This document shows positions 26,935-64,000 of a stretch of 64,000 nucleotides of DNA, piece by piece. The stretch spans positions 2,976,001-3,040,000 of the forward strand of contig NC_052147.1 in assembly GCF_902713615.1 (NCBI RefSeq), written 5' to 3'. The DNA is from Scyliorhinus canicula. Taxonomy: Eukaryota. Made by a program: the position numbers and the translations under genes. Below the pieces are notes generated by a model. The model did not search any database and was not told the DNA's origin. It saw nothing but the letters and a program-made list of their open reading frames with translations. Position 1 is the first letter of the stretch; each line of letters opens with the position of its first letter.

Positions 26935-26987
26935 TGACGGTGCAGCAACTGTTATTTTTGAGTAAGAATGTGTTTTTCTCTTGAGAG

Positions 26988-32305: not shown

Positions 32306-32511
32306 GAATACATTCAGTGGCATTACCATCACTGAATCCCCTTGATCAGCATCCTGTAGGCTACCATTGACCTGAAATTGAACTGTACTAGCCATATAAA
32401 TATAGGGATGGGCAATAGGTGCTGGCTGAGCCAGCGACGCCCACATCTGGTAAATTAATTTTAAAACTCCCTGAAGTGTGGCCAGCTGTATTTTTCCTGT
32501 TTGCCTTTCAG

Positions 32512-33780: not shown

Positions 33781-34895
33781 CCACCGGTTCTCCCTGGTCA
33801 ACTCTACTAATTACATCTTCAAAGAATTCCGGTAGATTTGTCAAGCATGATTTTCCTTTTGTAAATCCATGCTGACTTTGACTGATTATACCACTGCTTT
33901 CCAAATGCTGTGCTATGAAATCCTTGATAATGGACTCCAGCAACTTACCTCCTACCGACGTTAGGCTCACTGGTCTATAGTTCCCTGTTTTCTCTCTACC
34001 TCCCTTTTTGAAAAGCAGGGTTACATTCGCTACCCTCCAATCTGTAGGAACCATTCCGGAGTCGAAAGAATTTTGAAAAATTATCACCAATGTATCTACT
34101 ATTTCTAGGGTCACTTCCTTAAATACTCTGGGATGAAGATTATTAGGCCCTGGAGATTTGTCCGCCTTTAATTCCATTAATTTCCCCAAAATAATTCCTT
34201 TACTAATACTGATTTCCTTCAGCTCCTCACTGAAACTTGTGTTTCTCATTATTCATGTCTTACTCTGTGAAGACAGAAGCAAAATACGATTTAGTTCCTC
34301 AGCCATTTCTTTGTCCCTGTTATGAATTCCCCCATTACTGACTGTAAGGGGCCTACTTTAGTTTTTATCAATCTTTTTCTCTTTACATACCGACAGAAAG
34401 TCTTAGTCAGTTTTTATGTTCACCTCTAGCTGACTTTCAGATTATATTTTCCCTGGGTCACTGTCTGTGTGGAGTTTGCACATTCTCCCCGTGTCTGTGT
34501 GGGTTTCGCCCCACAACCCAAAGATGAGCAGAGTAGGTGGATTGGCCACACTAAACTGCCCCTCAATTGGAAAAAAATAATTGGGTACTCTAAATTTTAA
34601 AAAAAAAATTGTATTTTCCTCTTTTGAAAAAATAAATTCCAATTAAAGAACGACTTAGCGTGGACCTACCCTGCACATCTTTGGGTTGTGGGAGTGAGAC
34701 CCACGCAGACACGGGGAGAATGTGCAAACTCCACACGGACAGTGACCCAGAGCCAGGATCGTTTTCCCCTTCCTAATCTATCCCTTGGTCTGCCTTTGCT
34801 GAATTTTAAACTGTTCTCAATCCTCGGGTCTCTTGCTTTTTCTTGCTAATTTGTATGCCTCAGCTTTGAATCTAATACTATCTCTAATTTCTGTT
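33781..34895 (-). mobile_element. CR1 ORF2 fragment interrupted by two SINE pieces (34455-34608 +, 34622-34761 -)
   Basis: ORF 33770-34249: KSPGP..HPRV, NYRPVSLTS, SQHGFTKGKSCLTN. Confidence 0.9.
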
Positions 34896-36668
34896 GGTGC
34901 TGCGCTCCCTCGGCCTGACCCTCCTCGGCCCACCCCCTCTGCCGGCGCGGCGCTCCCTCGGCCCTGCGCTCCCTCTGCCGGCGCGGCACTCCCTCGGCCC
35001 ACCCCCTCTGCTGGTGCGGCACTCCCTCTGCCGGCCCGGCGCCCCCCGGCCCTGTGCTCCCTCTGCCGCCCCCCCCCCCCCCCCCCCCCCCGGCCCTGCG
35101 CTCCCTCCGCCGGCCCACCCCCTCTGCCGGCCCGGCGCCCCCTCGGCCCACCCCCTCTGCCGGCCCGGCGCCCCCTCGGCCCACCCCCTCTGCCGGCCCG
35201 GCGCCCCCTCGGCCCACCCCCTCTGCCGGCCCGGCGCCCCCTCGGCCCACCCCCTCTGCCGGCCCGGCGCCCCCTCGGCCCACCCCCTCTGCCGGCCCGG
35301 CGCCCCCTCGGCCTACCCCCTCTGCCGGCCCTGCGCTCCCTCTGCCGGCCCGGCGCTCCCTCGGCCCTGCGCTCCCTCTGCTGGCCCGGCGCTCCCACGG
35401 CCAACCACCTCTGCCGGCACGGCGCCCTCTCAGCCCTGCGCTCCCTCTGCCGGCCCGGCGCTCCCACGGCCCACCACCTCTGCCGGTAAGGCGCCCTCTC
35501 GGCCCTGCGCTCCCTCGGCCTGACCCTCCTCGGCCCACCCCCTCTGTCGGCACGGCGCTCCCTCGGCCCACCTCCTCTGCCGGCACTTCGCTCCCTCGGC
35601 CCTGCGCTCCCTCTGCCGGCACGGCGCCCCCTCGGCCCACCTCCTCTGCCGGCCCTGCGCTCCCTCTGCTGGCCCTGCGCTCCCTCGGCCCTGCGCTCCC
35701 TCTGCCGACCCTGCGCTCCCTCGGCCCTGCGCTCCCTCTGCCGGCCCGGCGCTCCCTCTGCCGGCCCGGCGCTCCCTCGGCCCTGCGCTCCCTCTGCCGA
35801 CCCTGCGCTCCCTCTGCCGGCCCTGCGCTCGCTCTGCCGGCCCTGCGCTCCCTCTGCCGGCCCTGCGCTCCCTCGGCCCTGCGCTCCCTCTGCCGGCCCT
35901 GCGCTCCCTCTGCCGGCACTGCGCTCCCTCGGCCCTGCGCTCCCTCTGCCGGCCCGGCGCCCCCTCGGACCACCCCCTCTGCCGGCCCGGTGCTCCCTTG
36001 GCCCTGCGCTCCCTCTGCCGGCGCGGTGCTCCCTTGGCCCTGCGCTCCCTCTGCCGGCGCGGTGCTCCCTTGGCCCTGCGCTCCCTCTGCCGGCGCGGTG
36101 CTCCCTTGGCCCTGCGCTCCCTCTGCCGGCGCGGCGCTCCCTTGGCTCTGCGCTCCCTCTGCCGGCACGGTGCTCCCTTGGCCCTGCGCTCCCTCTGCCG
36201 GTGCGGCGCCCCCTCTGCCCTGCGTTGCCTCAGCCCACCCCCTCTGCCGGCGCGGTGCTCCCTTGGCCCTGCGCTCCCTCTGCCGGCGCGGCGCTCCCTT
36301 GGCTCTGCGCTCCCTCTGCCGGCGCGGTGCTCCCTTGGCCCTGCGCTCCCTCTGCCGGTGCGGCGCCCCCTTGGCCCTGCGCTCCCTCTGCCGGCGCAGT
36401 GCTCCCTTGGCCCTGCGCTCCCTCTGCCGGCGCAGTGCTCCCTTGGCCCTGCGCTCCCTCTGCCGGCGCAGTGCTCCCTTGGCTCTGCGCTCCCTCTGCC
36501 GGCGCAGTGCTCCCTTGGCTCTGCGCTCCCTCTGCCGGCCTGGCGCTCCCTCGGCTCTGCGTTGCCTCGGCCCACCCCCTCTGCCGGCGTGGCGTCCCCT
36601 CTGCCCTGCGTTGCCTCGGCCCACCCCCTCTGCCGGCCCGGCGCTCCCTCGGCCCGGCACCTCGGCCG
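34896..36668. repeat. CpG-rich compound minisatellite (modules CCCTGCGCTCCCTCTGCCGG / CTCGGCCCACCCCCT) in TMED8 intron 5
   Basis: Directly visible; ~33-36 bp higher-order units. Confidence 0.95.
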
Positions 36669-36931
36669 TGCAGTGCTTTGGAATTTGTGCTGTGGTATCT
36701 GCCGCACCCCATTTATTTGGAGTTTTCAGGCAGTGATTCTCAGCCTAGTTTAGCTGTACGGTACTGGCTTTGTTCCAATGACATCAGGTGGATCATCCAG
36801 CTATAAACCAGAGCCCTGGTGTATTGCCCTCTGCATCCACCTTTGCTAAATCATCTCCCTCTGGCCTCATCATTGTTCAACTGTCTCTCCCTCTTGTGCT
36901 GCTATTAATAACCGCATCCATTTTTCCCCAG

Positions 36932-38202: not shown

Positions 38203-38504
38203 TAATAATCTTTATTGTCACAAGTAGGGTTACATTAACGCTGCAATGACGTTATGGTGAAAATCCCCGAGTCGCCACATTCCGGCGCCTGTTCAGGTAC
38301 ACAGAGGGAGAATTCAGAATGTCCAATTCACCTGACAGCACGTCTTTCGGGACTTGTGGGAGGAAACCGGAGCACCCGGAGGAAACCCACGCAGACACGG
38401 GGAGAATGTGCAGACTCCGCACAGACAGTGACCCAAGCCGGGAATCAAACCTGGGACCCTGGTGCTGTGACGCCGCAGTGCTAACCACTGTGCTACCGTG
38501 CCGC
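38203..38504 (-). mobile_element. V-SINE with GTGACAATAAA tail
   Basis: Reverse complement of the copy at 31996-32305. Confidence 0.85.
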
Positions 38505-38580
38505 ACATTGGGATGGTAACTTCAAGATGAGAGCAAAATGAGCAGTATAAATTAAAGTTAGTCTCTAAAAATGCATTATA

Positions 38581-39720
38581 GGGGACATCCGGTGGCAGCC
38601 ATGGAGTCATTGGTCGCGCATTTGGTGGCTTTCGCTTAAGGTGAAAGTTTCTCGTCCTTCCCCACCCGATTTGAGGGGTGTTTTGCTGGTGAATGGTCCA
38701 TAAGCACTGAAGGATTGCAATACTCTGGTGGGGCTGGATTATGGCTTACCAGAGTGTAACAAATAAGAGGCAGCAGCTTGGTCACGAGAATCGTCGAGGT
38801 GCGACACAGAAAAAGATCGCAGAAGGTGCTGGGGAATCGTTGGCCGCCCAGTGGTCTGCAGAGCAGCTGGTGAACTTTCTGAACAACAAGTTCCAGCAGC
38901 AGAGGGTGGAGCCTCAGAGGACCTGGCTAACAAGGGGCTGGCTTAGCACTGTGGACTAAACATCTGGTTTGTAATGCAGAACAAGACCAGCAGCGCGGGT
39001 TCAATTTCCGTACCGGCATCCCCAAACAGGTGCCGGAATGTGGTGACTAGGGGCTTTTCACAGTAACTTCATTGAAGCCTACTTGTGACAAACTATTATT
39101 ATTAATGTGGTGGAGCAGCGTAGGGCAGCTATCGATAGATAGAGTGGAGCAAAGGCTGACAGCACGGGGCCTGGCACTCCAGAAGGTGGAGGAGTCGATG
39201 GGCGAGCATGAGGACTGGCTCTCCTCGCTGGAGACGGAGGTAGTGCAGGTGGCGGAATAGCCAAAGGAGGTTGAGGGAGAAGGTGGAGGACCTTGAGAAG
39301 CGCTCCAGGAGGCAGAATCTACGGATTTTGTGGGGATGTTGAAGGAGTGCAGGCTGTTAAATACGCCCCAAATATACTGGAGAGGCTTATTGGAGGAGGG
39401 GGTCTTTCACTGTCCCCTCGAGGTGGATCGAGCGTAGAGGGCGCTGAGGAGGAGGCTGAATGCCGGAGAGTCGGCGATGGGGGTGAGGCTGCATTGTTTT
39501 CTCCATTTGAATCAGATGGGTGAGGCAGACAAAGCAGAGCACCTGGGACGGGAACAAGCTGAGAATATACCAGGACCCGGGTGTGGAGTTGGCCAACCGG
39601 TAGGCTGCCCACAACTGGTTCAAGGCTGCCCTCTACAAGGAAGGGTGATGTTTGGGGTGCAGTATCCTGCTTGTCTGTGGGTCACACATTAGAATTGGGA
39701 GTTTTATTTTGATACACCCC
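38581..39720 (+). mobile_element. L1-clade LINE 5'UTR and degraded ORF1, split by a SINE at 38935-39105
   Basis: Coiled-coil-like segment followed by DLEKRSRRQNLRI (~39289-39327), the L1 ORF1p DLENRSRRxN motif. Confidence 0.75.
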
Positions 39721-45930: not shown

Positions 45931-47690
45931 CTGTTCTGCTAATGACTAGGTCAGGGCTAATGTGACTCTTCCTTTGCTTCTGTAGCCTGTTTGAAGATTC
46001 AGAGCACTTGTTGTAGCCTGCACCAATTAGTAAGGGCAGACTGGTTCCCTGATGGACTTGCACACTGCTTCGCTCAGCTATTGAATAGTTAGAACACTTA
46101 ACGTGATGTACCTAATATGGACAAAGGAACTTTGTACGGCAATTATTGGTATTTCGCACCAAGAGAATCTTGTAACATCAAAGAAGGCCATTTGGCCCAT
46201 TGTGCTTCTGCTGGCCTTTTGAAGACGCTATACAATTAGTCCCATAACCCTGCAAATGTTTTACCTTTCAACTCCTTATCCAATTCCCTTTTGAAAGTTA
46301 TTGAATCTGCAGCGTGTTCCAGATCATCGGGGATCGCTGTGGCAATATTTTCCCCGTATCTCCCCTTTGATTCATTTTCTCGTTTTAACCATGTCCTCTG
46401 GTTATCATTCCTCTTCACTGGAAACAGTTTTTCCTGCCTCCCAAAACCCTTTGTGACTATGAACAGATCTATGAAATGTCCCCCAAAGCTCTGCTCCAAT
46501 GAGTCCAGTCTCTGCACAATAATCAATGTTGGCAGTGAATACTTGATGCAGGTCTTTTAATTATCATTAAAGTGCCCCCAAGTGTTTCTATAGCATTATA
46601 ATGTAGTGAGCTGCTATTGGTCATGTTGCGCAACTTCTCCTCATCTATCTTTAGACCTCATTCTGCTGGGGGGGGTCTGATTAATAGCTCTATTTTCCAC
46701 TCTGTCAGTTAATGTTAAGTCAGGTAGGTAGGTGCCTTAGTGATGTAAATCTATTTTACGGTAGAGGTGGATCCCGAATCTCCAAATCAGCTCTGAGTAA
46801 GTCCAGCAATGATTCAAAGGGATGATACTTGGGACAAAGGAACTAAGTTCTCAAGGCGAGTCTGGGTCCCTTGAAGAGGGGGATGAATTGATTAAGGTCT
46901 GCAAAGTAATGAAGATGATTGACAGAAAGGGGGTGATTCTTCTTTTGAACAGGGTGAGGACTTAGTTTAAGGAAGGGACAATACCATTTGGGAATATCTT
47001 TTGAAATTAGATGGTGGAGTTAGATGAAGGGGGTGTGAGTTCAAACTGGGGGATGGTAAAGATGGGAAGTTCTGCTTTGCACAGATCGATATGAGGAACG
47101 GATGTGGAGACAAACAATTGGATTGTTAAATCTTTCCCATTATGGGGCATCATTGCCACGGGGTGGGATATACCCACCCTTATTCCAGGGATTCCCATTA
47201 TCCTAGGTTTTCCCACTCCTATTATACTGGGATAATAAATTAATCCCTGAGTGTAAATCCCTGGGATAAGAGTGGGAGCTCTTGGATGAGAGTGTGAATT
47301 CCTGGGATAAGAGTGGGAATCCCTGGGATAGTCACTGGGAATTCCTGGGATAAGAGTGCTAATCCCTGGGATAGTGAATGGGAATCCCTGGGATAGAGAA
47401 TGGGAATCCCTGGGATGATGAGTGGGAATTCTGGGATGATGAGTGGGAATTCCTGGGATAGTGAATGGGCATTCCGGGATAATGAGTGGGAATTCCAGGA
47501 TATTGAGTGGGAATTCTGGGATAGTGAGTGGGAATTCTTGGATAATGAATGGGAATTCCGGCATAGTGAGTGGGAATTCCGGGACAATGATCGGGAATTC
47601 CGGGTAACGAGCAGGACATCTGGGTTAATGAGCGGGAATTCTGGGGTAGTGTGTGGGAATTCTGGGTAGTGAGTGGGAATTCTGGGATAA

Positions 47691-48562
47691 GTAGTGGGCC
47701 GAATCTCGAATAATGATGAGTCAGAATACAGGAGGGATATTGAGAACCTAGTGGAGTGGTGCAGTGACAACAATCTCTCCCTCAATGCCAGCAAAACTAA
47801 AGAGCTGGTCATTGACTTCAGGAAGCAAAGTACTGTACACACCCCTGTCAGCATCAACGGGGCTGAGGTGGAGATGGTTAGCAGTTTCAAATTCCTAGGG
47901 GTGCACATCTCCAAAAATCTGTCCTGGTCCACCTACGTCGACGCTACCACCAAGAAAACACAACAGCGCCTATACTTCCTCAGGAAACTAAGGAAATTTG
48001 GAATGTCCACATTAACCCTTACCAACTTTTACAGATGCACTATAGAAAGCATCCTATCTGGCTGCATCACAGCCTGGTATGGCAACTGCTCGGCCCGGGA
48101 CCGCAAGGAACTTCAGAGAGTCGTGAACACCGCCCAGTCCATCACACAAACCTGCCTCCCATCCATTGACTCCATCTACACCTCCTGCTGCCTGGGGAAA
48201 GCGGGCAGCATAATCAAAGACCCCTCCCACCCGGCTTACTCACTCATCCAACTTCTTCCATCGGGCAGGAGATACAGAAGTCTGAGAACACGCACAAACA
48301 GACTCAGAAACAGCTTCTTCCCCATTGTTACCAGACTCCTAAATGACTACCTTCTGGACTGCCCCCATTAACAGTACAACCTGTATGCTTCACCCGATGC
48401 TGGTGTTGTGTAGTTACATTGTATATCTTGTGTTGCCCTATTATGTATTTTCTTTATTCACTTTTGTTCCCATGTACTTAATGATCTGTTGAGCTGCTCG
48501 CAGAAAAATATTTTTCACTGTACCTCGGTACACGTGACAATAAACAAATCCAATCCAATCCA
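47691..48562 (+). mobile_element. Rex1/Babar-type LINE 3' fragment (RT C-terminus plus DUF1891-like region, 3'UTR, (AATCC)n tail)
   Basis: ORF 47694-48371: WCSDNNLSLNASKTKELVIDFRK, FKFLGVHIS, QRLYFLRKL, FYRCTIESIL, LLPSGRRYRS. Confidence 0.85.
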
Positions 48563-49120
48563 TAATGAGCGGGAATTCCGGGATAGTGAGCAGGAATTCC
48601 AGGGATAATGAGCGGTAATTCCAGTATAGTGAGTGGGAATTTCAGGATAGTGGGTGGGAATTCTGGAAAGTGAGTGGGAATTCCAGGATAGTGAGTGGGA
48701 ATTCCGTCATAATGATCGGAAATTTCAGCATAATGAGAGGGAATTCCGGGACAGTGAGAGGAAATTCTGGGTTAACGAGTGGGAATTCTGGAATAGTGAG
48801 TAGGAATTCCAGGAAAATGAGTGGGAATTCCATGATAGTGAATGAGAATCCCTGGGATAGAGAGAGGGATTTTGGGATAGTGAATGTGAATTCTGGGATA
48901 GTGAGTGGGAATACCGGGTTTTGAGTGGGAATTCTGGGATAATGAGTGGGAATTCCAGGTTAATGACTGGCAATTCTGGGGTAGTGAGTGGGAATTCCAG
49001 GGTAGTGAGTGGGAATTCTGGGATAGTGAGCGGGAATTCCGGGGTAGTGAGTGGGAATTCTGGGATCATGAGCAGGAATTCCAGGATAATGAGCGGCAAT
49101 TCCGGGATAGTGAGTGGGAA

Positions 49121-52100
49121 CACTAGTGTTTTGTGTTTAAGCAAAGGAGATTACAATGGGATGAGAGAAGAACGAGCTAAGGTAGACTGGGAGCAAAGAC
49201 TTTATGGTGAAACAGTTGAGGAACAGTGGAGAACCTTCCAAGCGATTTTTCATAGTGCTCAGCAATGGTTTATACCAACAAAAAGGAAGGACGGTAGAAA
49301 GAGGGAAAATCCACCATGGATATCTAAGGAAGTAAGGGAGAGTATCAAATTGAAGGAAAAGGCATACAAAGTGGCAAAGATTAGTGGGAGACTAGAGGAC
49401 TGGGAAATCTTTAGGGGGCAACAGAAAGCTACTAAAAAAAACTATAAAGAAGAGTAAAATAGATTATGAGTAAACTTGCTCAGAATATAAAAACAGATAG
49501 TAAAAGTTTCTACAAATATATAAAACAAAAATGGGAGATGAGGAAATGGCTGAGGAACTGAACAGATTTTTTGGGTCAGTCTTCACAGTGGAAGACACAA
49601 ATAACATGCCAGTGACTGATAGAAATGAGGCTATGACAGGTGAGGACCTTGGGAGAATTGTTATCACTAAGGAGGTAGTGATGGGCAAGCTAATGGGGCT
49701 AAAGGTAGACAAGTCTCCTGGCCCTGATGGAATGCATCCCAGAGTGCTAAAAGAGATGGCTAAGGAAATTGCAAATGCACTAGTGATAATTTACCAAAAT
49801 TCACTAGACTCTAGGGTGGTCCCGGTGGATTGGAAATTAGCAAACGTGACACCACTGTTTAAAAAAGGAGGTAGGCAGAAAGCAGGAAATTATGGGCCAG
49901 TTGGGTTAACTTTGGTAGTAGGGAAGATGCTGGAATCTATCATTAAGGAAGAAATAGCGAGGCATCTGGATAGAAATTGTCCCATTGGACAGACGCAGCA
50001 TGGGTTCATAAAGGGCAGGCCGTGCCTAACTAATTTAGTGGAATTTTTTGAGGGACATTACCAGTGCGGTAGATAACAGGGAGCCAACGGATGTGGTATA
50101 TCTGGATTTCCAGAAAGCTTTTGACAAGGTGCCACACAAAAGGTTGCTGCATAAGATAAAGATGCATGGCATTAAGGGTAAAGTAATAGCATGGATAGAG
50201 GATTGGTTAATTAATAGAAAGCAAAGAGTGGGGATTAATGGGTGTTTCTCTGGTTGGCAATCAGTAGCTAGTGGTGTCCCTCAGGGTATAGTGTTGGGCC
50301 CACAATTGTTCACAATTTACATAGATTATTTGGAGTTGGGGATCAAGTGCAATGTGTCCAAGTTTGCAGACGACACTAAGATGAGTGGTAAAGCAAAAAG
50401 TGCAGAGGATACCAGAAGTCTGCAGAGGGATTTGGATAGGTTAAGTGAATGGGCTAGGGTCTAGCAGATGGAATACAATGTTGACAAATGTGAGGTTATC
50501 CATTTTGGTAGGAATAACAGCAAAAGGGATTATTATTTAAATGATAAAATATATATATATTTTTTTAAGTTATGTTAAATTCTTTAATTTCTGAGACTGT
50601 TATATCCATACATCTAATATCTTAAACACTTTTTTCAACAAAATAGGCTTTTAATGGAAACGATGGTTGTTTAAGAGTTGTGGTGATACCCGCTGCTTTA
50701 AAATGTGGCGTTGTACAAACATGAATGTCAAAAAAGTCCTGGATACACCAAATAGTTATACATGTAGCTTGCATCCACATTACAGCAAACGCAGGTTTGT
50801 GGTCCAAAATACATCAGCCGTGTTCAGCATTTACTAGAGACAGCACAAAGGAAAGATTGGCTCCGAAAGCAAGATAAATCCCATTGGCAGATGAAGACCA
50901 GAAAACAATATTGCACTGATCGTTCCAACCTTTGTGTTTTGACTCTAATAAATAGTCCTGAGCTTTAATACTATTGCGAAGGGACAATAATTTAAAGGCG
51001 AAACCTGCAGCAAGTGTCTGTGTGATGTGCATATTCACAGCTTTAGCTAAATGTGCCACATTGGTCTCAACAGTACTAATTTCAATAGATAATTCCTGAC
51101 GACAAAGATTCTACTGTGTATACAGTGGTTACACGCAAGATTATTTGTGTTATCATACAACTTTGTCCAACAAAAACAATTAGTATTGGCTTACATTTAC
51201 AGTATTAAGATTAATTGCTTTTTAAATGGGATTTATTTTCCCAGTACTTTGAGATCTACAAGATGCGCCTAGAAAAAAAATACTACAGTGGAGAATGAAG
51301 TAAGCTTGAATAGTGGGAGGTACAATTCCAGATTAATTGCTGTAACTTTGTCCTTCTGGGGGCTGAGCGAGTTTTCCGTTTTCTTTACACATCATTTAAC
51401 GCCGAAGTTCCGTCAGAACAGCTTTGATACTATATGAATTCTGCCATTTAGCTAGGACTGATATGCTTTTTGGATCCACCGTTTCATTGGAACTAATTAC
51501 TCCATTCATATTTATTTTTGTTACAAATCTAACATGTGGTGCTGCCTCTGGATATCTAGGACCACAGTCTATTTTAAGGCTGTACATGCGGTGTTCATAA
51601 ATTGTTCTTGCGGGTCCAATAATCATCCCTATCCACCTTGGAAGTGTCATATCTTCATCATCTTCATGTCCCCAACTTACTGTCCCATCACTTGCCCCCT
51701 TCTGGCCATCTTCTAGCTCTTCCAAAAGACGGAAATTGCGTGGAACTGTTACAGTCTTACTCCCGGTGGTCGCCATCTTGTGTCGCTCTAAATGATAAAA
51801 TATTAATAAATGCCGCTGTACTGGGTATGCTAGTGCTTGAGTCGCAAAAGTTGGTTTACAGGTGCAACAGGTGATTAAGAAGGCAAATGGAAATTTGTCC
51901 TTCATTGCTAGAGGGATGGAGTTTAAGACTAGGGAGGTTATGCTGTAATTGTATAAGGTGTTAGTGAGGCCACACCTGGAGTATTGTGTTCAGTTTTGGT
52001 CTCCTTACCCGAGAAAGGATGTACTGGCGCTGGAGGGTGTGCAGAGGAGATTCACTAGGTTAATCCCAGAGTTGAAGGGGTTGGATTACAAGGAGAGGTT

Positions 52101-52551
52101 GAGTAGACTGGGACTGTACTCGTTGGAATTTAGAAGGATGCGGGGGGGGGGGGGGGGGCGGAATCTTATAGAAACATATAAAATTATGAAGGGAATAGAT
52201 AGGATAGATGCGGACAGGTTGTTTCCACTGGCGGGTGAAAGCAGAACAAGGGGGCATAGCCTCAAAATAAGGGGAAGTAGATTTAGAACTGAGTTTAGGA
52301 GGAACTTCTTCACCCAAAGGGTTGTGAATCTATGCAATTCCTTGTCCAGTGAAGCAGTTGAGGCTCCTTCATTAAATGTTTTTACGGTAAAGACAGATAG
52401 TATTTTGAAGAATAAAGGGATTAAGGGTTATGGTGTTCGGGCCGGAAAGTGGAGCTGAGTCCACAAAAGATCAGCCATGATCTCATTGAATAGCAAACAG
52501 GCTCGAGCGGCCAGATGGCCTACTCCTGCTCCTACTTCTTACGTTCGTATG
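49121..52551 (+). mobile_element. CR1 LINE ORF2 (5'-truncated) inserted in the satellite and interrupted by the UBE2V1 retrocopy
   Basis: ORFs 48921-49457 (3' part), 49531-50076, 50048-50464 and 51949-52458 carry CR1 RT motifs. 3' tail TGGCCTACTCCTGCTCCTACTTCTTA. Confidence 0.95.
50553..51788 (-). pseudogene. UBE2V1: Processed pseudogene of ubiquitin-conjugating enzyme E2 variant 1 (CDS 51776-51333, premature TAA at 51398-51396)
   Basis: Intronless [27 protein letters not shown]...[39 protein letters not shown] (147 codons). 3'UTR with ATTAAA (50588-50583), decayed poly(A), 15-bp TSD TAAATGATAAAATAT (50538-50552 / 51789-51803). RTIYE, SISVL and YSN favour V1 over V2. Confidence 0.9.
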
Positions 52552-53939
52552 GAATTCCGGGATAATGAGTATGAATTCCGGGATAGTGGGTGGGAAATCT
52601 GTGATAATGAGTGGGAATTCTGGGGAAATAAGCGTGAATTCCAGGATAGTGAGTGGGAATTGAGAGATAGTGATTGGGAATTCCGGGATAATGAGTCGGA
52701 ATTCTGGGATAATTAGTATGAATTCCGAGATAGTGAGAAGGAATTCCGGGCTAATGAGCGTGAATTCCAGGATAGTGAGTGGGAATTCCGGGAAGATGAG
52801 TGGGAATTCCGGGATAGTGAGTGGGAATTCCGAGATAGTGAGTAGGAATTCCAGGTTAGTGAATGGGAATTCCGGCATAGTGAGTGGGAATTCCGAGATG
52901 TGAGAAGGAATTCCAGGTTAGTGAGTGGGAATTCCAGGGTAATGAGCGGGAATTCCACGATTGTGAGTGGGAATTCCAGGAAAACCATAGGGAATTCCGG
53001 GAAAGTGAGTGGGAATTCCGGAATAGTGAGTGGGAATCCCTGGGATAGAGAGTGGGAATTCCGGGACAGAGAATGGGAATTCTGGGATAATGACTGGGAC
53101 TTCTGGGGTACTGAGTGGGAATTCCTGGATAATGAGTGGGAATTCCAGGATAGCGAGTGGGAATTCCGGGATAATGAGCGGGAATTCCAGGATAGTGAAT
53201 GGGAATTTTGAGATATTGAGTGGGACATCCGTGCTACTGAGTGGGAATTCCAGGATAATTAGTATGAATTCCAGGGTTGTGGGAAGAATTCCGGGCTTAT
53301 GAGTGTTATTTCCAGGATAGTTTTTGGGAATTCCGGGGTAATGAGCGGGAATTCCACGTTTGTGACTGGGAATTCCGGGAAAATCATAGGGAATTCCGGG
53401 AAAGTTAGTGGGAAATCCGGAATACTGAGTGGGCCTCCCTGGGATAGAGAATGGGAATTCCGGGACAAAGAATGGGAATTCTGGGATAACGACTGGGACT
53501 TATGGGGTACTGAGTGGGAATTCCTGGATAATGAGTGGGAATTCCAGGATAGTGAGCGGGAATTACAGGATAGTCAGCGGGAATTCCGGGATAGTGAGTG
53601 GGAATTATATAATGAGCAGGAATCCAAGGATAATTAGTGGGAATTCCGGGATGGTGGGTAAGAAATCCGGGATAATGAGCGGGAATTCCAGGATAGTGAA
53701 TGGGAATTCTGAGATATTGAGTGGGACATCAGTGCTAATGAGTGGGAATTCTGGGATAATGAGCAGGAATTCCGGGATAATGAGTGGAAAGTCCGGGAAA
53801 AAGAGTGGGAATTCCAGGATAATGAGCAGGAATTCCGGGATAATGAGCAGAAATTCCGGGATAATGAGTGGAAAGTCCGGGAAAAAGAGTGGGAATTCTG
53901 GGATAATGGAGTTGGACAGGTTCCTGGTCTTCCTAATTT

Positions 53940-54000
53940 TCCCGTTGCGCAAACCTGATGAATGGGGGCGTGGCTCTAGTATGACGTCCGTGCACATTAG
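53940..54000 (+). promoter_or_regulatory. Candidate core promoter motifs for the downstream unknown gene
   Basis: C/EBP palindrome TTGCGCAA (53945-53952), KLF/Sp box GGGGGCGTGGC (53964-53974) and CRE-like TGACGTC (53982-53988), in a ~90-bp unique island between two arrays. Confidence 0.45.
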
Positions 54001-54004
54001 TGGG

Positions 54005-54891
54005 TGGGGCTCCCGGGGGGGGCGGGGCTCCCGGCCCGGGGGGGGGCTCCCGGCCCGGGGGGGGGGCGGGGCTCCCGGCCCGGGGGGGGGGGGGGGGCTC
54101 CCGGCCCGGGGGGGGGGGGGGGGGCTCCCGGCCCGGGGGGGGGGGGGGGGCTCCCGGCCCGGGGGGGGGCTCCCGGCCCGGGGGGGGGGGGGGGGGGGGC
54201 TCCCGGCCCGGGGGGGGGGGGGGCTCCCGGCCCGGGGGGGGGGCTCCCGGACCGGGGGGGGGGCTGCCGGCCCGGGGGGGGGGGGCTGCTCCCGGCCCGG
54301 GGGGGGGGGCGGGGCTCCCGGCCCGGGGGGGGGGGGCGGGGCGGGGCGGGGCGGGGGGGGGGCGGGGCGGGGCGGGGGGGGGGGCGGGGCGGGGGGGGGG
54401 GCGGGGCGGGGGGGGGGCGGGGCGGGGGGGGGGCGGGGCGGGGGGGGGGGGCGGGGCGGGGGGGGGGGGGGCGGGGCGGGGGGGGGGCGGGGGGGGGGGC
54501 GGGGCGGGGGGGGGGGCGGGGCGGGGCTCCCGGCCGGGGGGGGGGGGCGGGGCTCCCGGCCCGGGGGGGGGGCGGGGGGGGGGCGGGGCGGGGGGGGGGG
54601 CGGGGCGGGGGGGGGGGGGGGGGCGGGGGGGGGGGGGGGCGGGGGGGGCGGGGCGGGGCTCCCGGCCGGGGGGGGGGGCGGGGCTCCCGGCCCGGGGGGG
54701 GGGCGGGGGGGGGCGGGGCGGGGGGGGGGGCGGGGCGGGGGGGGGCGGGGCGGGGGGGGGGGGGGCGGGGCGGGGGGGGGGGGGGCGGGGCGGGGCTCCC
54801 GCCCGGGGGGGGGGGCGGGGCTCCCGGCCCGGGGGGGGGGGCGGGGGCTCCCGGCCAGGGGGGGGCTCCCGGGGTGCATTGCGGGGGGGGG
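54005..54891. repeat. Extremely G-rich array (GGGCTCCCGGCCC+Gn and GGGGC repeats)
   Basis: Directly visible; homopolymer lengths may be unreliable. Confidence 0.93.
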
Positions 54892-54932
54892 AGTTTTGAA
54901 TGGGGAGGGATGTGAGGGAGGGAGGTGTGAGG

Positions 54933-54985
54933 ATGGAGTTTTACTCACTCTGGTCCCTCACTGAGTCGCCCCACAGGTTCCTCAG
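54933..54985 (+). CDS. Unknown gene, coding exon 1 (MEFYSLWSLTESPHRFLR; alternative in-frame ATG at 54900), phase 2
   Basis: Strong Kozak aggATGg, in-frame stop at 54897, donor CAG|GTAAAT, phase matches exon 2. Confidence 0.6.
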
Positions 54986-55002
54986 GTAAATGGAACCGGT
55001 TT

Positions 55003-58000
55003 GGGGGGGTCCTGCCCTTGCTGTGCAGTGGGGGGGGGGGGGTCTGCCCTGCCCTTGCTGTGCAGGGGGGGGGGGGGGTCTGCCCTTGCCCTTGCTGTGC
55101 AGTGGGGGGGGGGGGGGGGGGTCTGCCCTTGCTGTGCAGTGGGGGGGGGGGGGGGTCTGCCCTTGCTGTGCAGTGGGGGGGGGGGGGGGGTCTGCCCTTG
55201 CTGTGCAGTGGGGGGGGGTCTGCCCTTGCTGTGCAGTGGGGGGGGGGGGGGGTCTGCCCTTGCTGTGCAGTGGGGGGGGGGGGGGGGGTCTGCCCTTGCT
55301 GTGCAGGTGGGGGGGGGGGGGGGGGTCTGCCTTGCTGTGCAGGGGGGGGGGGTGGTCCTGCCCTTGCTGTGCAGTGGGGGGGGGGGGGGTCCTGCCCTTG
55401 CTGTGCAGTGGGGGGGGGGGTGGTCCTGCCCTTGCTGTGCAGTGGGGGGGGGGGGTCCTGCCCTTGCTGTGCTGTGGGGGGGGGGGTGTCCTGCCCTTGC
55501 TGTGCAGTGGGGGGGGGGGTCCTGCCCTTGCTGTGCAGTGGGGGGGGGGGTGGTCCTGCCCTTGCTGTGCAGTGGGGGGGGGGGGGTGTCCTGCCCTTGC
55601 TGTGCAGTGGGGGGGGGGGGTGGTCCTGCCCTTGCTGTGGCAGTGGGGGGGGGGGGTGGTCCTGCCCTTGCTGTGCAGTGGGGGGGGGGGGGGTCCTGCC
55701 CTTGCTGTGCAGTGGGGGGGGGGGGGGTCCTGCCCTTGCTGTGCAGGGGGGGGGGGGGGGTGTCCTGCCCTTGCTGTGCAGTGGGGGGGGGGGGTTCCTG
55801 CCCTTGCTGTGCAGTGGGGTGGGGGGGTCCTGCCCTTGCTGTGCAGTGGGGGGGGGGGGTCTGCCCTTGCTGTGCAGTGGGGGGGGGGGGGTGGTGGTCT
55901 GCCCTTGCTGTGCAGTGGGGGGGGTGGTGGTCTGCCCTTGCTGTGCAGTGGGGGGGGGGGGGGTGGTTGCCCTTGCTGTGCAGTGGGGGGGGGGGGGGGG
56001 GGGGGTCTGCCCTTGCTGTGCAGTGGGGGGGGGGGTGTGGTCGCCCTTGCTGTGCAGTGGGGGGGGGGGGGGGTCTGCCCTTGCTGTGCAGTGGGGGGGG
56101 GGGGGTCTGCCCTTGCTGTGCAGGGAGGGGGGGGCTGCCCTTGCTGTGCAGGGAGGGGGGGGGCTGCCCTTGCTGTGCAGGGGGGGGGGGGGGGGGGGTC
56201 TGCCCTGCTGGCAGTGGGGGGGGGGGTCTGCCCTTGCTGTGCAGTGGGGGGGTGGTCTGCCCTTGCTGTGCAGTGGGGGGGGGGGGTCTGCCCTTGCTGT
56301 GCAGTGGGGGGGGGGGGTGGTGGTCTGCCCTTGCTGTGCGGGGGGGGGTGGTGGTCTGCCCTTGCTGTGCAGTGGGGGGGGGGGGGGTGGTCCTGCCCTT
56401 GCTGTGCAGTGGGGGGGGGGGGTGGTCTGCCCTTGCTGTGCAGTGGGGGGGGGGGGTGGTCCTGCCCTTGCTGTGCAGTGGGGGGGGGGGGGGGGTCCTG
56501 CCCTTGCTGTGCAGTGGGGGGGGGGGGGGGTCCTGCCCTTGCTGTGCAGTGGGGGGGGGGGGGTGGTCTGCCCTTGCTGTGCAGTGGGGGGGGGGGGTGG
56601 TCCTGCCCTTGCTGTGCAGTGGGGGGGGGGGTGGTCCTGCCCTTGCTGTGCAGTGGGGGGGGGGGGTGGTCCTGCCCTTGCTGTGCAGTGGGGGGGGGGG
56701 GGTGGTCCTGCCCTTGCTGTGCAGTGGGGGGGGGGGTGGTCTGCCCTTGCTGTGCAGTGGGGGGGGGGGGGTGGTCCTGCCCTTGCTGTGCAGTGGGGGG
56801 GGGGTGGTCTGCCCTTGCTGTGCAGTGGGGGGGGGGGTGGTCCTGCCCTTGCTGTGCAGTGGGGGGGGGGGTGGTCTGCCCTTGCTGTGCAGTGGGGGGG
56901 GGTGGTCTGCCCTTGCTGTGCAGTGGGGGGGGTGGTCTGCCCTGCTGTGCAGTGGGGGGGGGTGGTCTGCCCTTGCTGTGCAGTGGGGGGGGGGGGGTGG
57001 TCTGCCCCTTGCTGTGCAGTGGGGGGGGGGGGTGGTCTGCCCTTGCTGTGCGGTGGGGGGGGGGGGTGGTCTGCCCTTGCTGTGCAGTGGGGGGGGTCTG
57101 CCCTTGCTGTGCAGTGGGGGGGGGTCTGCCCTTGCTGTGCAGTGGGGGGGTGGTCTTGCCCTTGCTGTGCAGTGGGGGGGGGTGGTCTGCCCTGCTGTGC
57201 AGTGGGGGGGGGGTTGGTCTGCCCTTGCTGTGCCAGTGGGGGGGGGGTGGTCTGCCCTTGCTGTGCAGTGGCGGGGGGGGGGGTGTGGTCTGCCCTTGCT
57301 GTGCAGTGGAGGGAGGGTGGTCTGCCCTTGCTGTGCAGGTGGGGGGGGGGGGTGGTCTGCCCTTGCTGTGCAGTGGGGGGGGGGGGGTGGTCTGCCCTTG
57401 CTGTGCAGTGGGGGGGGGGGGTGGTCTGCCCTTGCTGTGCAGTGGCGGGGGGGGGGGGTGGTCTGCCCTTGCTGTGCAGTGGGGGGGGGGGGGGGTCTGC
57501 CCTTGCTGTGCAGTGGGGGGGGGGGTGGTCTGCCCTTGCTGTGCAGTGGGGGGGGGGTGGTCTGCCCTTGCTGTGCAGTGGGGGGGGGTGGTCTGCCCTT
57601 GCTGTGCAGTGGGGGGGGGTGGTCTGCCCTTGCTGTGCAGTGGGGGGGGGGGGGGTGGTCTGCCCTTGCTGTGCAGTGGGGGGGGGGGTGGTCTGCCCTT
57701 GCTGTGCAGTGGGGGGGGGGTGGTCTGCCCTTGCTGTGCAGTGGGGGGGGGGGTGGTCTGCCCTTGCTGTGCAGTGGGGGGGGGGGGTGTCCTGCCCTTG
57801 CTGTGCAGTGGTGGGGGGGGGGGGGTGTCCTGCCCTTGCTGTGCAGTGGGGGGGGGGGTGTCCTGCCCTTGCTGTGCAGTGGGGGGGGGGGGTGTCCTGC
57901 CCTTGCTGTGCAGGGGGGGGGGGGGGGGGTGTCCTGCCCTTGCTGTGCAGTGGGGGGGGGGGGTGTCCTGCCCTTGCTGTGCAGTGGGGGGGGGGGGGTG

Positions 58001-58313
58001 TCCTGCCCTTGCTGTGCAGTGGGGGGGGGGGTGTCCTGCCCTTGCTGTGCAGTGGGGGGGGGGTGTCCTGCCCTTGCTGTGCAGGGGGGGGGGGGTGTCC
58101 TGCCCTTGCTGTGCAGGGGGGGGGGGTGTCCTGCCCTTGCTGTGCAGTGGGGGGGGGGGGGTGTCCTGCCCTTGCTGTGCAGTGGGGGGGTGTCCTGCCC
58201 TTGCTGTGCAGTGGGGGGGGGGGGTCCTGCCCTTGCTGTGCAGTGGGTGGGGGGGGGGGGTGTTCTGCCCTTGCTGTGCAGTGGGGGGGGGGGTCTGCCC
58301 TTGCTGTGCAGTG
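55003..58313. repeat. Minisatellite CTGCCCTTGCTGTGCAGT + G-run + (T)GGT(C), ~30-36 bp, ~100 units, in intron 1 of the unknown gene
   Basis: Directly visible; starts about 17 nt after the donor. Confidence 0.97.
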
Positions 58314-58945
58314 GTTGGTGTAGCAGTTACACATGGAGGGTGGACACCATTCATTACCCAGGGAAGGTCCTGTTTCTGTTCTCCTTATCCTCCCAACAAA
58401 AGTCCCTTACCTGAGTCCTACAAGGATGTTCCTGCCTTAGAGAGTTGGCAGGTCCTTCCACACCCCTCCTCCTTATTGATTCCAATGCCACTGAAACCCC
58501 TAACCTGCTGCCACTTGGCAATTATTCCCTGTGTTTCACTCATTTATACCTCATGCTCCAGGTCCCCGAGTAGGTGATGTCTTTATCTTGAACCAGTGCA
58601 GTCTGCAGGATGTCTGTCCAGTTCTATTCCTTATCTGGTGCTTTCCGGACACTCCAAAGGGAAAAGTAAGACCTAATCGGTGGTGGACTGAAGCTGCCTC
58701 TAGAGCAGATTTCCTCCGCTAAAGGATATTTGTGAACCCTATGGTTTTTTCTGGTAATCTAAGATCTTCTTGGTTCTATTTACCTAGATTTTTAATTCAA
58801 ATTCTCATACAGTAATTTTTCTCCTACCTCCTTGGAGGTTTCCCAATAAAACAGGATGAGTGAAGGGTGTACAAGCTTTCATTGGAGGCAGTTTTAGACC
58901 AGCTCAGAGTTTTGACTGGTTTCCGTGCTGCCTCTTGTCTTACAG

Positions 58946-59122
58946 AAAGCACAACGGATCCTTCTACTGTTGCCAGTTGGCACTACCGCTACCAGAGCAC
59001 CTGGTTATTTTTGGTTTGGGGAACTGGAACATGCCCACGGAGGAGACCTTTTTCTCAGTTGAGGTGTTGGTGAGCGCTGAAATCAAACCTCAGAGAATCG
59101 GACTACTTTCCCCAGCAGTGAG
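58946..59122 (+). CDS. Unknown gene, coding exon 2 (KHNGSFYCCQLALPLPEHLVIFGLGNWNMPTEETFFSVEVLVSAEIKPQRIGLLSPAVR), phase 2 to 2
   Basis: Acceptor CCTCTTGTCTTACAG|, donor AG|GTGAGG, 177 nt open, globular-like composition. Confidence 0.7.
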
Positions 59123-59348
59123 GTGAGGCCGGTTTGGCAGGTGTTATCTTCAGGTGTTTGAGGGATGTGTTCATATTGATGGATTGGATTTGTCTGACCC
59201 TGTGACTGGAAATGACATTATGAGGTAATTACAGCAAAAGAAACGGATCATTTGGCCTAGCTCCTCCAAATGACCCTCTTCCCACCTGTACTTCATCCCA
59301 CCCGATCAGATGAACTTCTATTAATTTTTCCCTTAAATAACTATTATT

Positions 59349-59592
59349 AGGGCAGCACGGTGGCCTTGTGGTTAGCACAACCGCCTCACGGCGCTGAGGT
59401 CCCAGGTTCGATCCCAGCTCTGGGTCGCTGTCTGTGTGGAGTTTGCACATTCTCCCCGTGTCTGCGTGGGTTTAGTCCCCACAACCCAAAAAAATGTGCA
59501 GGGTAGGTGGATTGGCCACGCTAAATTGCCCCTTAATTGGAAAAAATAATTGGGTAATCTAAATTTATAAAAAAAAAAAATTAAAAAAAAAA
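59349..59592 (+). mobile_element. Short poly(A)-tailed V-SINE variant with TSD
   Basis: AACTATTATT at 59339-59348 and 59592-59601. Confidence 0.88.
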
Positions 59593-61118
59593 ACTATTAT
59601 TGGCCTCAACCACTCCATGTGGAAGTGTGTTCCACATTGTTGGTTTTTTCCCCCCCTCCGGAACGTTCTATTAGATTTATTAGCGACTATCTTCTATTTA
59701 TAGCCTCAAGTTCTGGTCTCTCCCACAAGTGGAAACATCTCTATTTTTAAAATTTGGTGAATTTTGAACTGGTGTAATATAGTTTGTCTAACGGAATGAC
59801 CACTGGGGCTTTGGGTATAGGACAATTCCTAAAATCCCTGAAGAGGCAGATGGTGACACTGCTTAACACCCATTGCCACGTTGTTTCTCGATCAGCTTCT
59901 GGACTCAATCTGATGGCCCAGTGCAGGCTGAGCTTCCATTACTGGTTCTTGGTGAGTTCCAGTCAATATTTTGTTTTTGTCTAATTGTGAGATTGCCAAT
60001 AGCAGTCTTGCGTTAATACAGATCGTGTTTTCTTGCTTGAGTTTGGGCATGGTGTTCTGTCAGGCCCAAACCCTGAATTGTCAAGTTCACTGATCTGGTT
60101 GAAATGGTATCGTAACGTGAGAAGAGAAGGAATGGTGTAGAAATGGCTAAAGATAAGTGACAGATTCTGCAATTAACATCAACTCATCATGGAGCATAAA
60201 TGCAAAGTCAACCAACCAGATGCTGAGGGCCAACAGTTGTCACACTGGAACTGGCCGTCTTCAGCACTGTGACCAATGATCATCACTGGGAGGTGAGGGG
60301 AACATTGTTGAGGGTTGGGCCCGTGTGAAGGGACTAACCAAAGAAAGAATGGTGAAGAAACTGGGACATGAAAAGGATGTGATTGAGAGGGACCTGTAAT
60401 AGCGGCTGGTAAATAGTTGGTAACTGGAGCAACACTTCAATATACTAAAACATTGTTGGGTGAGGAGAGACACAAGGAAGAAATTTAGAGGGAGAAATTT
60501 ACAGTTGGGAAGATTTGGACAGGGTTCGTTAGGAGACCAAAATCTCCAACCCTATTCGATGATGTGACGAGTCTAGACTTCCTGTGCTCTGAATGAGTGA
60601 GCTAAGATGTGCTTGCTGATTGCCAGGCACCAACAACCTGGATTTGTATAGTGCCTGAGCATGAAGCCTCCTGAGTGCTTCAGCAAGTCTTTTCTGACAG
60701 TCAGTCAGATATTAGGACATGTGACTAAAGGCTTAGTCGAGGAAATAGGTTTGAAAAGAGGAAATGAGGCAGAGAGCTGTAGAGAGGGAATTCCGGAGTT
60801 TGGGGCCCAGACAATGGAAGACACGGCCCCAATGGTGGGGTGATTGGAATTCCCAAGACACAAGAATCAGGAATCAGGGGAACGCCGAGATCTTGGAGGG
60901 TTTTGGGGGGGGGGGGGGGGGGGGTGCTGGAGGACGTTACAAGGATGTGGTAGACCATGGAGGGGTTTGAAAATCAGGATGTTGGTTAAACAGAAGCAAG
61001 TGTAGGTCTGTGAGCACTGGGTGGGGAGGGAGGAAGAAACACGTGTAGGGAAGTGGCCACTTGGTGGGTTTCTAAGATGCTGTCTTATGCTCTGAGTGAC
61101 TCTGTTTGTACTCCGTAG

Positions 61119-61224
61119 GTGTCTGGTGTGGCAGGGAGACTGGAGGAGTGAGCTGACGGCAGCTGCCAGGGAGCAGGCAGAGAGAGGGGGCCACGGGACA
61201 TTGTGTTTGATCCTGAACGGGCAG
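61119..61224 (+). CDS. Unknown gene, coding exon 3 (CLVWQGDWRSELTAAAREQAERGGHGTLCLILNGQ), phase 2 to 0
   Basis: Acceptor TCTGTTTGTACTCCGTAG|, donor CAG|GTAGGA, frame matches exon 2. Confidence 0.7.
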
Positions 61225-62205
61225 GTAGGACGTGGTGAGGTTTACACAGTAACTATGAATAGAGAAAGGAATGTAGAGATACCGAAAGTCTGAATTTCAA
61301 ACTGGACACGCAGAAGTCTGAGAGGACTACGTCTGAAAGGGCAAGTGAACAGATTGTCTGCCACTTTGCGTCATAGATTCGTACAGTACAGAATGAGGCC
61401 TTTTGGCCCATCAGGCTGACACTGGCTCTTTCACAGAGCTGTCCAGTTCATCTCACTCCTCCTGATCTGTCCCTACAGCCCAGTGTTTTTTTCCATCCAT
61501 TCAGGAATTGTATTTATTTCCTATTGAGCTTCTTAATTTCTTAGTTGTGCCCCCTACCCCACCTCCACAAAACTGAAAATTAATTGGACATTCACACAGT
61601 TTTGCTGCTAACCCTCATCGTCCTGTATTCTGATCTCTGAGCAGTGAATCGCTGTCCCAGGCTGTACTGGGTTCCAGTGTGTTTTGCTGCCCATCCCCCA
61701 TTTAAACCCAGTCCGTATGGTGTTTAACCCGGGGAGTAGCTTGTTTTATACTTCAAGCCAGCAACATTTTCTAGGGTGGTTAGTCTTCTGGGCTTAACAT
61801 AAAAATGGATTCCTTCCTTGATCTCGCGCTCTTAAAGGTAGCAATGCGGCGATGGGAATGATGCTCGACTGGGTGTGTGGCAGGTGGTGGGGGAACCAAC
61901 AAGAGGGAAACCTTACTTGATCTCTGTCTCACCAACATGCCTGTCGTAGATGCATCTGTCCACGACAATATAGGTAGAAGTGACCACTGCACAGTCCTTG
62001 TGGAGACAGACTCTTGTCTTCACTGAGGAAGCCCTCCATAGTGTGGTGTGGCACTACCACTGTGCTACATGCCATACAGTCAGAGCAGATCTAGTCAACG
62101 GGAATCAGAAGGAAACTGCTCTGGCTGCAGTCATAACTAGCACAAAGGAAGATGGATGCGATATTTGAAGGTCAATCAACTCATTGCTGCAGGGGTCAAA
62201 GTCTT

Positions 62206-62506
62206 GCCACGGTAGCACAGTGGTTAGCACTGTTGCTTCATAGAGCCAGGGTCCCGGGTTCGATTCCTGGCTTGGGTCACTGTCTGTGCGGAGTCTGCAC
62301 GTTCTCCCCGTGTCTGCGTGGGTTTCCTCCGGGTGCCCCGGTTTCCTCCCACAAGTCCCGAAAGACGTGCTTGTTAGGTGAATTGGACATTCTGATGTCT
62401 CCCTCCGTGTACCCGAACAGGCGCCGGAGTGTGGCGACTAGGGGCTTTTCACAGTAACTTCACTGCAGTGTTCATGTAAGTCTACTTGTGACACAAAGAT
62501 TATTAT
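62206..62506 (+). mobile_element. V-SINE with GTGACA-type tail
   Basis: Matches 31996-32305. Confidence 0.85.
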
Positions 62507-62879
62507 GTAGTCTAAATATTACTCCGAAAATAATTTGAGAGAAATATAAAAACGGGGGAAAAACCGCTGGAAAGGATTAAATTTATTTCTTTGGTTATTA
62601 TTGTTCCTGTCAGTTTGCAAACCGGCCCAATTTTAGATAGTTTAAAAAAAACAATTGGTGAAATCACACAAACAAATTACAGAACGATCTGAGTGTGAAA
62701 GTGATGCCTGTTTCCCACCGCACCAGATATTTTATTGAATTTAAATTTCACCGTCTGCCCTGCTGGGAATCTAACCGGCTCCCCAGACCATTACTCTGGG
62801 TCTGTGGATTACTAAACCAGTAATAATACCCCGACGCCACTGCCTGCCCCCACTCCACATCCCAACTCGGGTGTCAGTG

Positions 62880-63345
62880 TTGTAGCTGTGCTACAAGAGC
62901 TGGTGAGGGGTGGGTCAAGATGCAGACAGTTAATAAGAACAGAGTGAAGGAGGTTTTGTTCCCTCACCACCTGCTGCAGTCCCAGTCTAGCAGCTATTGT
63001 CCCTTAGGCCCCGGCCAGCTCGGTCTGTGGTGGTACCGAGCCACTCTTGGCGATGGACATTGAAGTCCCCACCCAGAGCATATTCTGTGCCCTTGCCTCC
63101 CCCAGTGCTTCCTCCACGTGGTGTCCAACATGGAGGAGAACTGATTCATCAGCTGATGGTGGCCGGGGTAACCAGCAGGAGCTTTCCTTGCCCATGTTTA
63201 ACCTGAAGCCACGAGACTTCATGGGGTCCGGAGTCGATGTTGAGGACTCCCAGGTCAGCTCCTTCCTGATCGTGTACCACTGTGCTGCCACCTCTGCTGT
63301 GTCTGTCCTGCTGGTGAGACAGGACATACCCAGTGATGGTGATGT
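62880..63345 (-). mobile_element. LINE endonuclease-domain fragment (CR1/L2 group); related pieces at ~61765-62095 (+) and a 3' tail at 63352-63475 (+)
   Basis: ITITGYVLSHQQDRHSRGGSTVV...HEVSWLQVK and a GDFNVH-like motif on the minus strand. Confidence 0.7.
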
Positions 63346-63499
63346 CTAACAGCACTCTAGGTGTACCTGCAGCAGTTCAAGAAGGTAGCTGAGCACCAGC
63401 TTCTCAAGGGCAATTAGGGATGGGTGATAAATGCTGACTTAGCCAGTGATGCCCCACGTTCTGAGAGAGAATAAAGAAGGTGTATTTGTTTTCTGTTAG

Positions 63500-63625
63500 T
63501 GTAAGAGGGTGGATTTCTCCAGCAGTACACCAGTGATTCCTGCCAAGACGCGCCCGGCTCTGGATGATGCTCTGATCGACCTCCTGGATGACATCTCCCC
63601 ACTTTTTCCCTCTTTCCTCGCAGTT
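63500..63625 (+). CDS. Unknown gene, coding exon 4 (CKRVDFSSSTPVIPAKTRPALDDALIDLLDDISPLFPSFLAV), phase 0 to 0
   Basis: Acceptor TATTTGTTTTCTGTTAG|, donor |GTAAGT, frame matches exon 3. Could instead read through to the stop at 63760. Confidence 0.65.
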
Positions 63626-64000
63626 GTAAGTACCTGTGTAAGATTTCCTGTGGAGGGATTGGGAATGGGATTTCCTGGAGGGAATGAGCAGTCAGAATCA
63701 ATTCTCCCTCGTTCTGCCAATGTGCGAAGCTTCCATGTACAGATTCCTGATCTCCTTTAACCAGATTTGGGGAGGAATTTACCCCCTCATTTATAACACT
63801 TGAAATTTTCTACTGGAGGGGAGGTTGAGGTGGAGGTTATTAAACACTACTTCAATGTTACATTTGAGAACAGGAGGAGTGGGCTATTCAGCCCCTTGGG
63901 CCAGGTTCACCATTCAATATAATGACTGACCTGTTTCTTGGCTCAGTTTATCCACACGCGTGTGAAACCCTTGCCCAACAAAGGTCTGTTCATCTGGATG

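Follow-up and report, generated by a model that had tools for sequence, protein, structure and literature searches.

KLHDC2 carries a BC/Cul2 box C-terminal to its kelch propeller. RABEPK, the Rab9 effector p40, is present in mammals and is not known to have any domain besides kelch. Hikeshi is a nuclear import carrier of Hsp70; its N-terminal domain binds phenylalanine-glycine (FG) nucleoporins, and its C-terminal domain forms an asymmetric dimer that recognises ATP-bound Hsp70 (PMC10636164). Here we describe a gene of the catshark Scyliorhinus canicula that encodes a predicted Hikeshi-like domain and a kelch propeller in one protein. It begins in a stretch of 64,000 nucleotides (RefSeq assembly GCF_902713615.1, contig NC_052147.1, positions 2,976,001 to 3,040,000 of the forward strand), referred to as the window. 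We conclude, with a probability of about 0.9, that this gene is the known and RefSeq-annotated orthologue of zebrafish zgc:163014, and that its first four coding exons lie at window positions 54900-63625.

Four coding exons of a zgc:163014 family gene

The part of the gene that falls within the window, and the repeat array upstream of it, are as follows.

54002-54865, + strand: tandem array of G-rich, GC-box-like 19-26 bp units, for example GGGGCGGGGCTCCCGGCCC, just 5' of exon 1 (Tandem Repeats Finder; GC content 0.71-0.92)
54900-54985, + strand: coding exon 1, residues 1-29 of the RefSeq protein at 100 % by tblastn
54986-58945, + strand: intron 1, with GT...AG ends, mostly a 34-bp minisatellite
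58946-59122, + strand: coding exon 2, core of the predicted Hikeshi-like N-terminal domain (N-domain), with an invariant PLP...G.W motif (phmmer; tblastn at 100 %; invariant columns)
61119-61224, + strand: coding exon 3, last strands and helix of the N-domain, with a W.G.W motif (tblastn; AlphaFold2 model)
63500-63625, + strand: coding exon 4, which completes the N-domain and opens the disordered linker (100 % to RefSeq residues 124-165)
63626-64000, + strand: first part of intron 4; the exons for the remaining linker and for the kelch propeller follow outside the window

Four segments (54933-54985, 58946-59122, 61119-61224 and 63500-63625) are each followed directly by GT, and segments 2-4 are directly preceded by AG and a pyrimidine-rich tract. 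Joined, they give 462 nt and a stop-free frame of 154 residues. The spliced peptide is identical to residues 12-165 of two S. canicula RefSeq proteins (154/154, 100 %), with no gap and with the same junctions. These proteins are XP_038677853.1 (543 residues, named 'protein GLUTELIN PRECURSOR ACCUMULATION 3 isoform X1') and XP_038677863.1 (445 residues, named 'ras guanine nucleotide exchange factor F isoform X2'). Each of the four exons maps to the window at 100 % by tblastn. Beyond the four exons, tblastn found no further match of the 543-residue protein within the window.

A preliminary description of this DNA had proposed a real multi-exon gene from the raw sequence, and its four exons, phases and junctions were exact. 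It had also called the gene unrecognised. The gene is already known: a RefSeq model exists for the catshark genome itself, and NCBI annotates orthologues in many vertebrates. Where no family had been assignable, the peptide can now be placed as the N-terminal part of the zgc:163014 kelch-repeat family. Nor is it a whole protein. The 154 residues are less than one third of the 543-residue RefSeq product, and residues 166-543 are encoded beyond position 64000. In assembly GCA_902713615.2 the coding sequence spans 26,758 bp and ends near window coordinate 81.6 kb, about 17.6 kb past the end of the window.

Homologues support the same exon structure. When 1.84 billion representative proteins were scanned exhaustively with HMMER, exon 2 alone (58 residues) gave 35 matches. 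The best (E = 3.8e-16) was a 544-residue sawfish zgc:163014 protein, and the single-stretch matches lie in the N-terminal 20-80 residues of sequences 470-590 residues long. By tblastn against the window, sawfish, teleost and axolotl homologues match precisely the four segments, including the 17-codon exon 1. In that exon the pattern MEFY..SL.E.P.R is conserved in all three, and the pairing with the sawfish homologue is MEFYSLWSLTESPHRFL against MEFYAVRSLAEPPGRLL. Conservation across the four exons is far beyond chance. Taken separately, the three larger exons had no Pfam match at E <= 10.

A predicted Hikeshi fold in the N-terminal domain

Exons 1-3 encode an N-domain of about 115 residues that shows the invariant columns of the family. 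We aligned 85 non-redundant N-domain sequences and used the alignment for AlphaFold2. Its invariant columns are P32, L33, P34, G43, W45 and G70 (PLP, G.W and G), and the W.G.W motif is near-invariant. The model has eight strands and one helix, with a predicted local distance difference test score (pLDDT) of 90.1 and a predicted template modelling score of 0.80. The predicted beta-sandwich comprises residues 12-125. A compact, beta-rich globular domain of the first 115 residues or so had been suggested in the preliminary description, together with a check by AlphaFold and Foldseek; a pLDDT of 90 bears out the first, and the second returned a confident N-domain with Hikeshi chains ranked first.

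In the Protein Data Bank (PDB), the top four Foldseek matches were Hikeshi chains (E = 5e-4 to 2e-3, TMq 0.61-0.64). The top 15 matches in the Swiss-Prot part of the AlphaFold database (AFDB) were all Hikeshi/OPI10 N-terminal domains. Foldseek probability was 1.0 for the Hikeshi matches. Among AFDB clusters, the family's own ranked first and Hikeshi-like proteins next. Alignment with VIA-align gave Z scores of 11.4 (root-mean-square deviation 2.8 A over 96 residues) and 10.6 (2.1 A over 90 residues) to Hikeshi, and 6.2 to the next fold. In a wide search independent of Foldseek, Hikeshi was the sole chain with Z >= 8 among 48,161 (10.4; next 5.7). A feature search of the ESM Atlas with the N-domain was uninformative (best score 0.52). 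The models predict that this domain, which has no Pfam match, adopts the fold of the Hikeshi/OPI10 N-terminal domain. This is the new result of the present analysis. It provides a first testable idea for a gene of fish, frog and chicken models that apparently has no mammalian counterpart.

A variable linker and a kelch propeller

The full-length AlphaFold2 model contains two confident domains, residues 12-125 and about 225-543. They are joined by a linker, residues 127-214, with pLDDT below 50. The preliminary description had read a serine/proline linker and an acidic amphipathic motif in exon 4. A disordered, serine- and proline-containing linker is indeed predicted; the helix of the motif, LDDALIDLLDDISPLFPSF, appears in the predicted model at low confidence only (residues 145-158). 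From the linker alignment, the acidic motif was rejected as a feature of the whole family, being conserved in chondrichthyans only. The SSTP motif at the end of the N-domain, also in exon 4, is widely conserved in the family. In tetrapods, lungfish and coelacanth the linker carries another short motif, SP[LV]L.E.TI.

In all full-length homologues, Pfam places kelch repeats (PF24681, E = 1e-57, and others) within the last 300 residues and has no match in the N-terminal region. The S. canicula RefSeq protein likewise has a C-terminal kelch propeller after the variable linker, encoded outside the window. The propeller resembles generic kelch domains of the KLHDC2/KLHL20/DRC7 type. When PDB sequences were searched with phmmer, the best match was the kelch domain of a dynein heavy chain (E = 1.8e-28), followed by KLHDC3 (E = 7e-23), LZTR1, FBXO42 and KLHDC2 (E = 2e-18). 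In the model, only two of the 543 residues follow the last beta-strand, which ends at 541, and the chain stops with the last blade.

Start codon and transcription

Two start codons can be considered. The RefSeq start is the ATG at 54900, the first after an in-frame TGA directly before it, with t at -3 (a weak context). The second, 11 codons downstream at 54933, has a at -3 and G at +4. Use of the first would add 11 residues, MGRDVREGGVR. It was chosen by RefSeq, and words over 54890-54990 are present in contigs of RNA runs. Its Kozak context is weak and that of 54933 strong, however, and the proteins of S. torazame, sawfish and chimaera begin at MEFY, which matches the ATG at 54933. Residues 1-8 also lie outside the domain and are predicted to be disordered (pLDDT below 50). 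Either ATG is possible. We lean towards 54933, and regard initiation at 54900 as the less probable of the two, though well within reach.

Sequencing runs from the same organism, classed as probable RNA, were sampled for words of the locus. Their contigs contain 0.33-1.00 of six sampled 31-mers of 54890-54990, in runs of four studies, and 0.08-0.13 of the sampled words of 58900-63700 (4.8 kb). The latter share is somewhat above the value of about 0.07 that the three exons alone would give; it fits expression without settling the matter. These data point weakly to transcription of exon 1 and its 5' flank.

The G-rich array at 54002-54865 is probably the promoter or 5' region of the gene. The motif GGGGCGGGG has 51 overlapping matches in 53901-54932. 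Around exon 1, GC content is 0.73-0.92 with a strongly positive GC skew. The minisatellite of intron 1 (55003-58314; 34 bp, about 99 copies, 88 % matches by Tandem Repeats Finder) is G-rich on the sense strand, with a skew of about +0.48. As a separate observation, this minisatellite is prone to G-quadruplexes and yields long spurious open reading frames (ORFs) on both strands.

Distribution of the family and its genomic neighbourhood

About 270 family matches were listed, from sharks, rays, chimaera, teleosts, gar, coelacanth, lungfish, amphibians, reptiles, birds and one hemichordate. Word-seeded searches were made with the N-domains of three proteins, from sawfish (11 matches), Umbra (136) and axolotl (141). 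The matches came from sharks, rays, many teleosts, gar, coelacanth, caecilians, salamanders, frogs, turtles, squamates and birds; the lungfish and hemichordate members were found by the exhaustive HMMER scan. The S. torazame sequence is 97.4 % identical to the spliced peptide; the value falls to 62.5 % for sawfish, about 45 % for teleosts, 43 % for axolotl and 32 % for Ptychodera. The narrow lineage restriction considered in the preliminary description does not hold, given that the gene occurs across jawed vertebrates and has a hemichordate relative. Its other suggestion, loss in mammals, agrees with the protein matches: no mammal occurs in any match list, and the gene seems to have been lost there.

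Automatic names within the family contradict one another. Some sources use 'uncharacterized protein zgc:163014' or 'rab9 effector protein with kelch motifs-like'. Others refer to KLHDC1/2, RABEPK, ACBD4/5/6, tip elongation aberrant protein 1, RING finger protein B, DRC7, TYW23, 'F-box only protein 42-like' and 'glutelin precursor accumulation 3'. One consistent name for the zgc:163014 family would help annotation. As a gene discovery the locus has no significance, the model being already in RefSeq; the family itself is mildly interesting.

The neighbouring genes agree with the assignment. An exon matching GOLD_2 (E = 3e-29) lies at about 32.6 kb of the window on the same strand, consistent with TMED8. 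The S. canicula gene occupies the position beside TMED8 that is characteristic of the family. The next gene called downstream in GCA_902713615.2 is on the opposite strand and has GST_N domains (GSTZ1-like). Two fused gene models were also found. In the teleost Dallia pectoralis, a TMED8-like GOLD_2 part is N-terminal to the family protein. In the frog Rhinoderma darwinii, a globin (neuroglobin) is C-terminal to it, and the whole is named 'neuroglobin'. Both fusions are annotation errors, useful as synteny hints, and they point to a conserved neighbourhood. In human 14q24.3, GSTZ1 and TMED8 are direct neighbours with NGB nearby. Such adjacency fits gene loss from a conserved block.

Candidate functions

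Read most simply, the protein would be a soluble adaptor that combines two putative protein-binding modules. In this two-module arrangement one partner would attach to the kelch propeller, and the Hikeshi-like sandwich would, like the N-terminal domain of Hikeshi itself, bind either a hydrophobic FG-type peptide or a partner of the Hsp70 type. The specific version, in which the N-domain has such a Hikeshi-like role in FG-type peptide or chaperone-linked binding, is a tentative hypothesis that we hold to be doubtful. A wider proposal is that sandwich and propeller together form an undescribed adaptor class, at least as old as the deuterostome ancestor. Its members would move or hold propeller-bound cargo through a Hikeshi-type pocket linked to FG nucleoporins or to Hsp70; in mammals, the class would have disappeared from the interval between TMED8 and GSTZ1. 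We consider this unlikely.

Several points weigh against the picture assembled so far. None of the 85 N-domains matches any Hikeshi Pfam model, even at E <= 10, and the N-domain family profile finds no Hikeshi chain among PDB sequences at E <= 10. The relation to Hikeshi is at the level of fold only, with an identity of 12-14 %, and a common fold is no proof of a common function. A possible local resemblance of the Hikeshi sequence to the 'LPxxxhVhFxLG' stretch of the N-domain was given no weight. No Hikeshi C-terminal dimerisation domain occurs among the Pfam matches of the homologues. Searches under zgc:163014 or six LOC symbols found no paper or experiment on the family, and no relevant literature linking Hikeshi with kelch was found. 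The mammalian absence rests on protein lists, not on a genome search. Finally, the runs used for transcription are classed only as probable RNA ('RNA?'), and the word share of exon 1 rests on 6 words.

A second candidate role is that of a substrate receptor of cullin-RING ligases, like KLHDC2, KLHDC3 and KLHDC10, whose propellers read C-terminal degrons. Function-named structures that best match the propeller include KLHDC3, LZTR1, FBXO42 and KLHDC2, and NCBI calls several orthologues 'kelch domain-containing protein 2'. However, the strongest PDB match is the dynein heavy-chain kelch domain, which argues that the similarity is generic, and no homologue has an F-box, BTB or SOCS Pfam match. 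In the model, the last strand reaches so close to the C-terminus that no extension would be left for a BC/Cul2 box. The receptor role is less likely because a box-bearing C-terminal extension is lacking, and we judge it distinctly improbable.

The protein could instead be a trafficking factor like RABEPK, with the N-domain and the acidic, DLL-type motif serving as membrane-traffic or adaptor-binding elements. Many orthologues are automatically named 'rab9 effector protein with kelch motifs(-like)', and the neighbouring TMED8 is a GOLD-domain gene. These names were transferred automatically from propeller similarity alone, however, and gene adjacency is no evidence of function. The confinement of the acidic motif to chondrichthyans also speaks against such a role, and RABEPK is not known to have a comparable N-domain. 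We think this very unlikely.

That the four exons form an ORF by chance amid repeats, or belong to a decayed pseudogene, as the G-rich array and 3.3-kb minisatellite flanking exon 1 and the lack of Pfam matches to individual exons might suggest, is scarcely credible: the exons are kept at the protein level in sharks, teleosts, amphibians, birds and a hemichordate, the 543-residue ORF is intact in RefSeq, the AlphaFold2 models are confident and exon words are present in contigs of the probable RNA runs.

Other features of the window

Long interspersed nuclear element (LINE) fragments fill the TMED8 introns and the intergenic region. These and further features are listed below.

9879-10307, 32026-32370, 38314-38610 (- strand), 59360-59506 and 62152-62457: short interspersed nuclear element (SINE)-like repeat, with a translation containing PGSIPGLGHCLCGVCTFSPCLRGF
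11014-12644, 21206-23252 (- strand), 49531-50464 and others: many LINE fragments bearing reverse transcriptase
25428-27067 and 34817-36806: two long GC-rich minisatellite blocks, with ORFs of 200-600 residues in several frames on both strands
51396-51905, - strand: ORF without introns, flanked by LINE fragments and encoding a UBE2V-like domain (ubiquitin-conjugating enzyme variant; UQ_con, E = 2.7e-13)
52551-53916: 21-bp satellite GGAATTCCGGGATAATGAGTG, about 65 copies, with a 399-bp higher-order period

The UBE2V-like ORF at 51396-51905 is probably a retrocopy. Repeat ORFs of the 'EFPLTIP' type, similar to the 21-bp satellite, were seen at 47007-47932 and 48725-49457.

Comparison with described systems

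RABEPK is a kelch propeller protein like the members of this family, many of which have borrowed its name. KLHDC2, KLHDC3, KLHDC10 and other propellers of the PF24681 type share the kelch propeller, which in the S. canicula protein forms the C-terminal half, outside the window. The KLHDC2/3/10 proteins have a BC-box/Cul2-box region after the propeller, which was not found here; the S. canicula protein has an extra, predicted Hikeshi-like domain at its N-terminus. Hikeshi/OPI10 (C11orf73; PDB 3wvz and 3ww0) is the Hsp70 nuclear import carrier whose FG-binding N-terminal domain has the fold predicted for residues 12-125. Whereas Hikeshi continues into a C-terminal helical dimerisation domain, the S. 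canicula protein has a long disordered linker and a kelch propeller instead. With the zgc:163014 family, the S. canicula gene shares sequence, exon junctions, the layout of N-domain, linker and kelch propeller, and the TMED8 neighbourhood. The RefSeq ATG lies 33 nt upstream of 54933; otherwise the gene does not differ from the family, of which it is a member.

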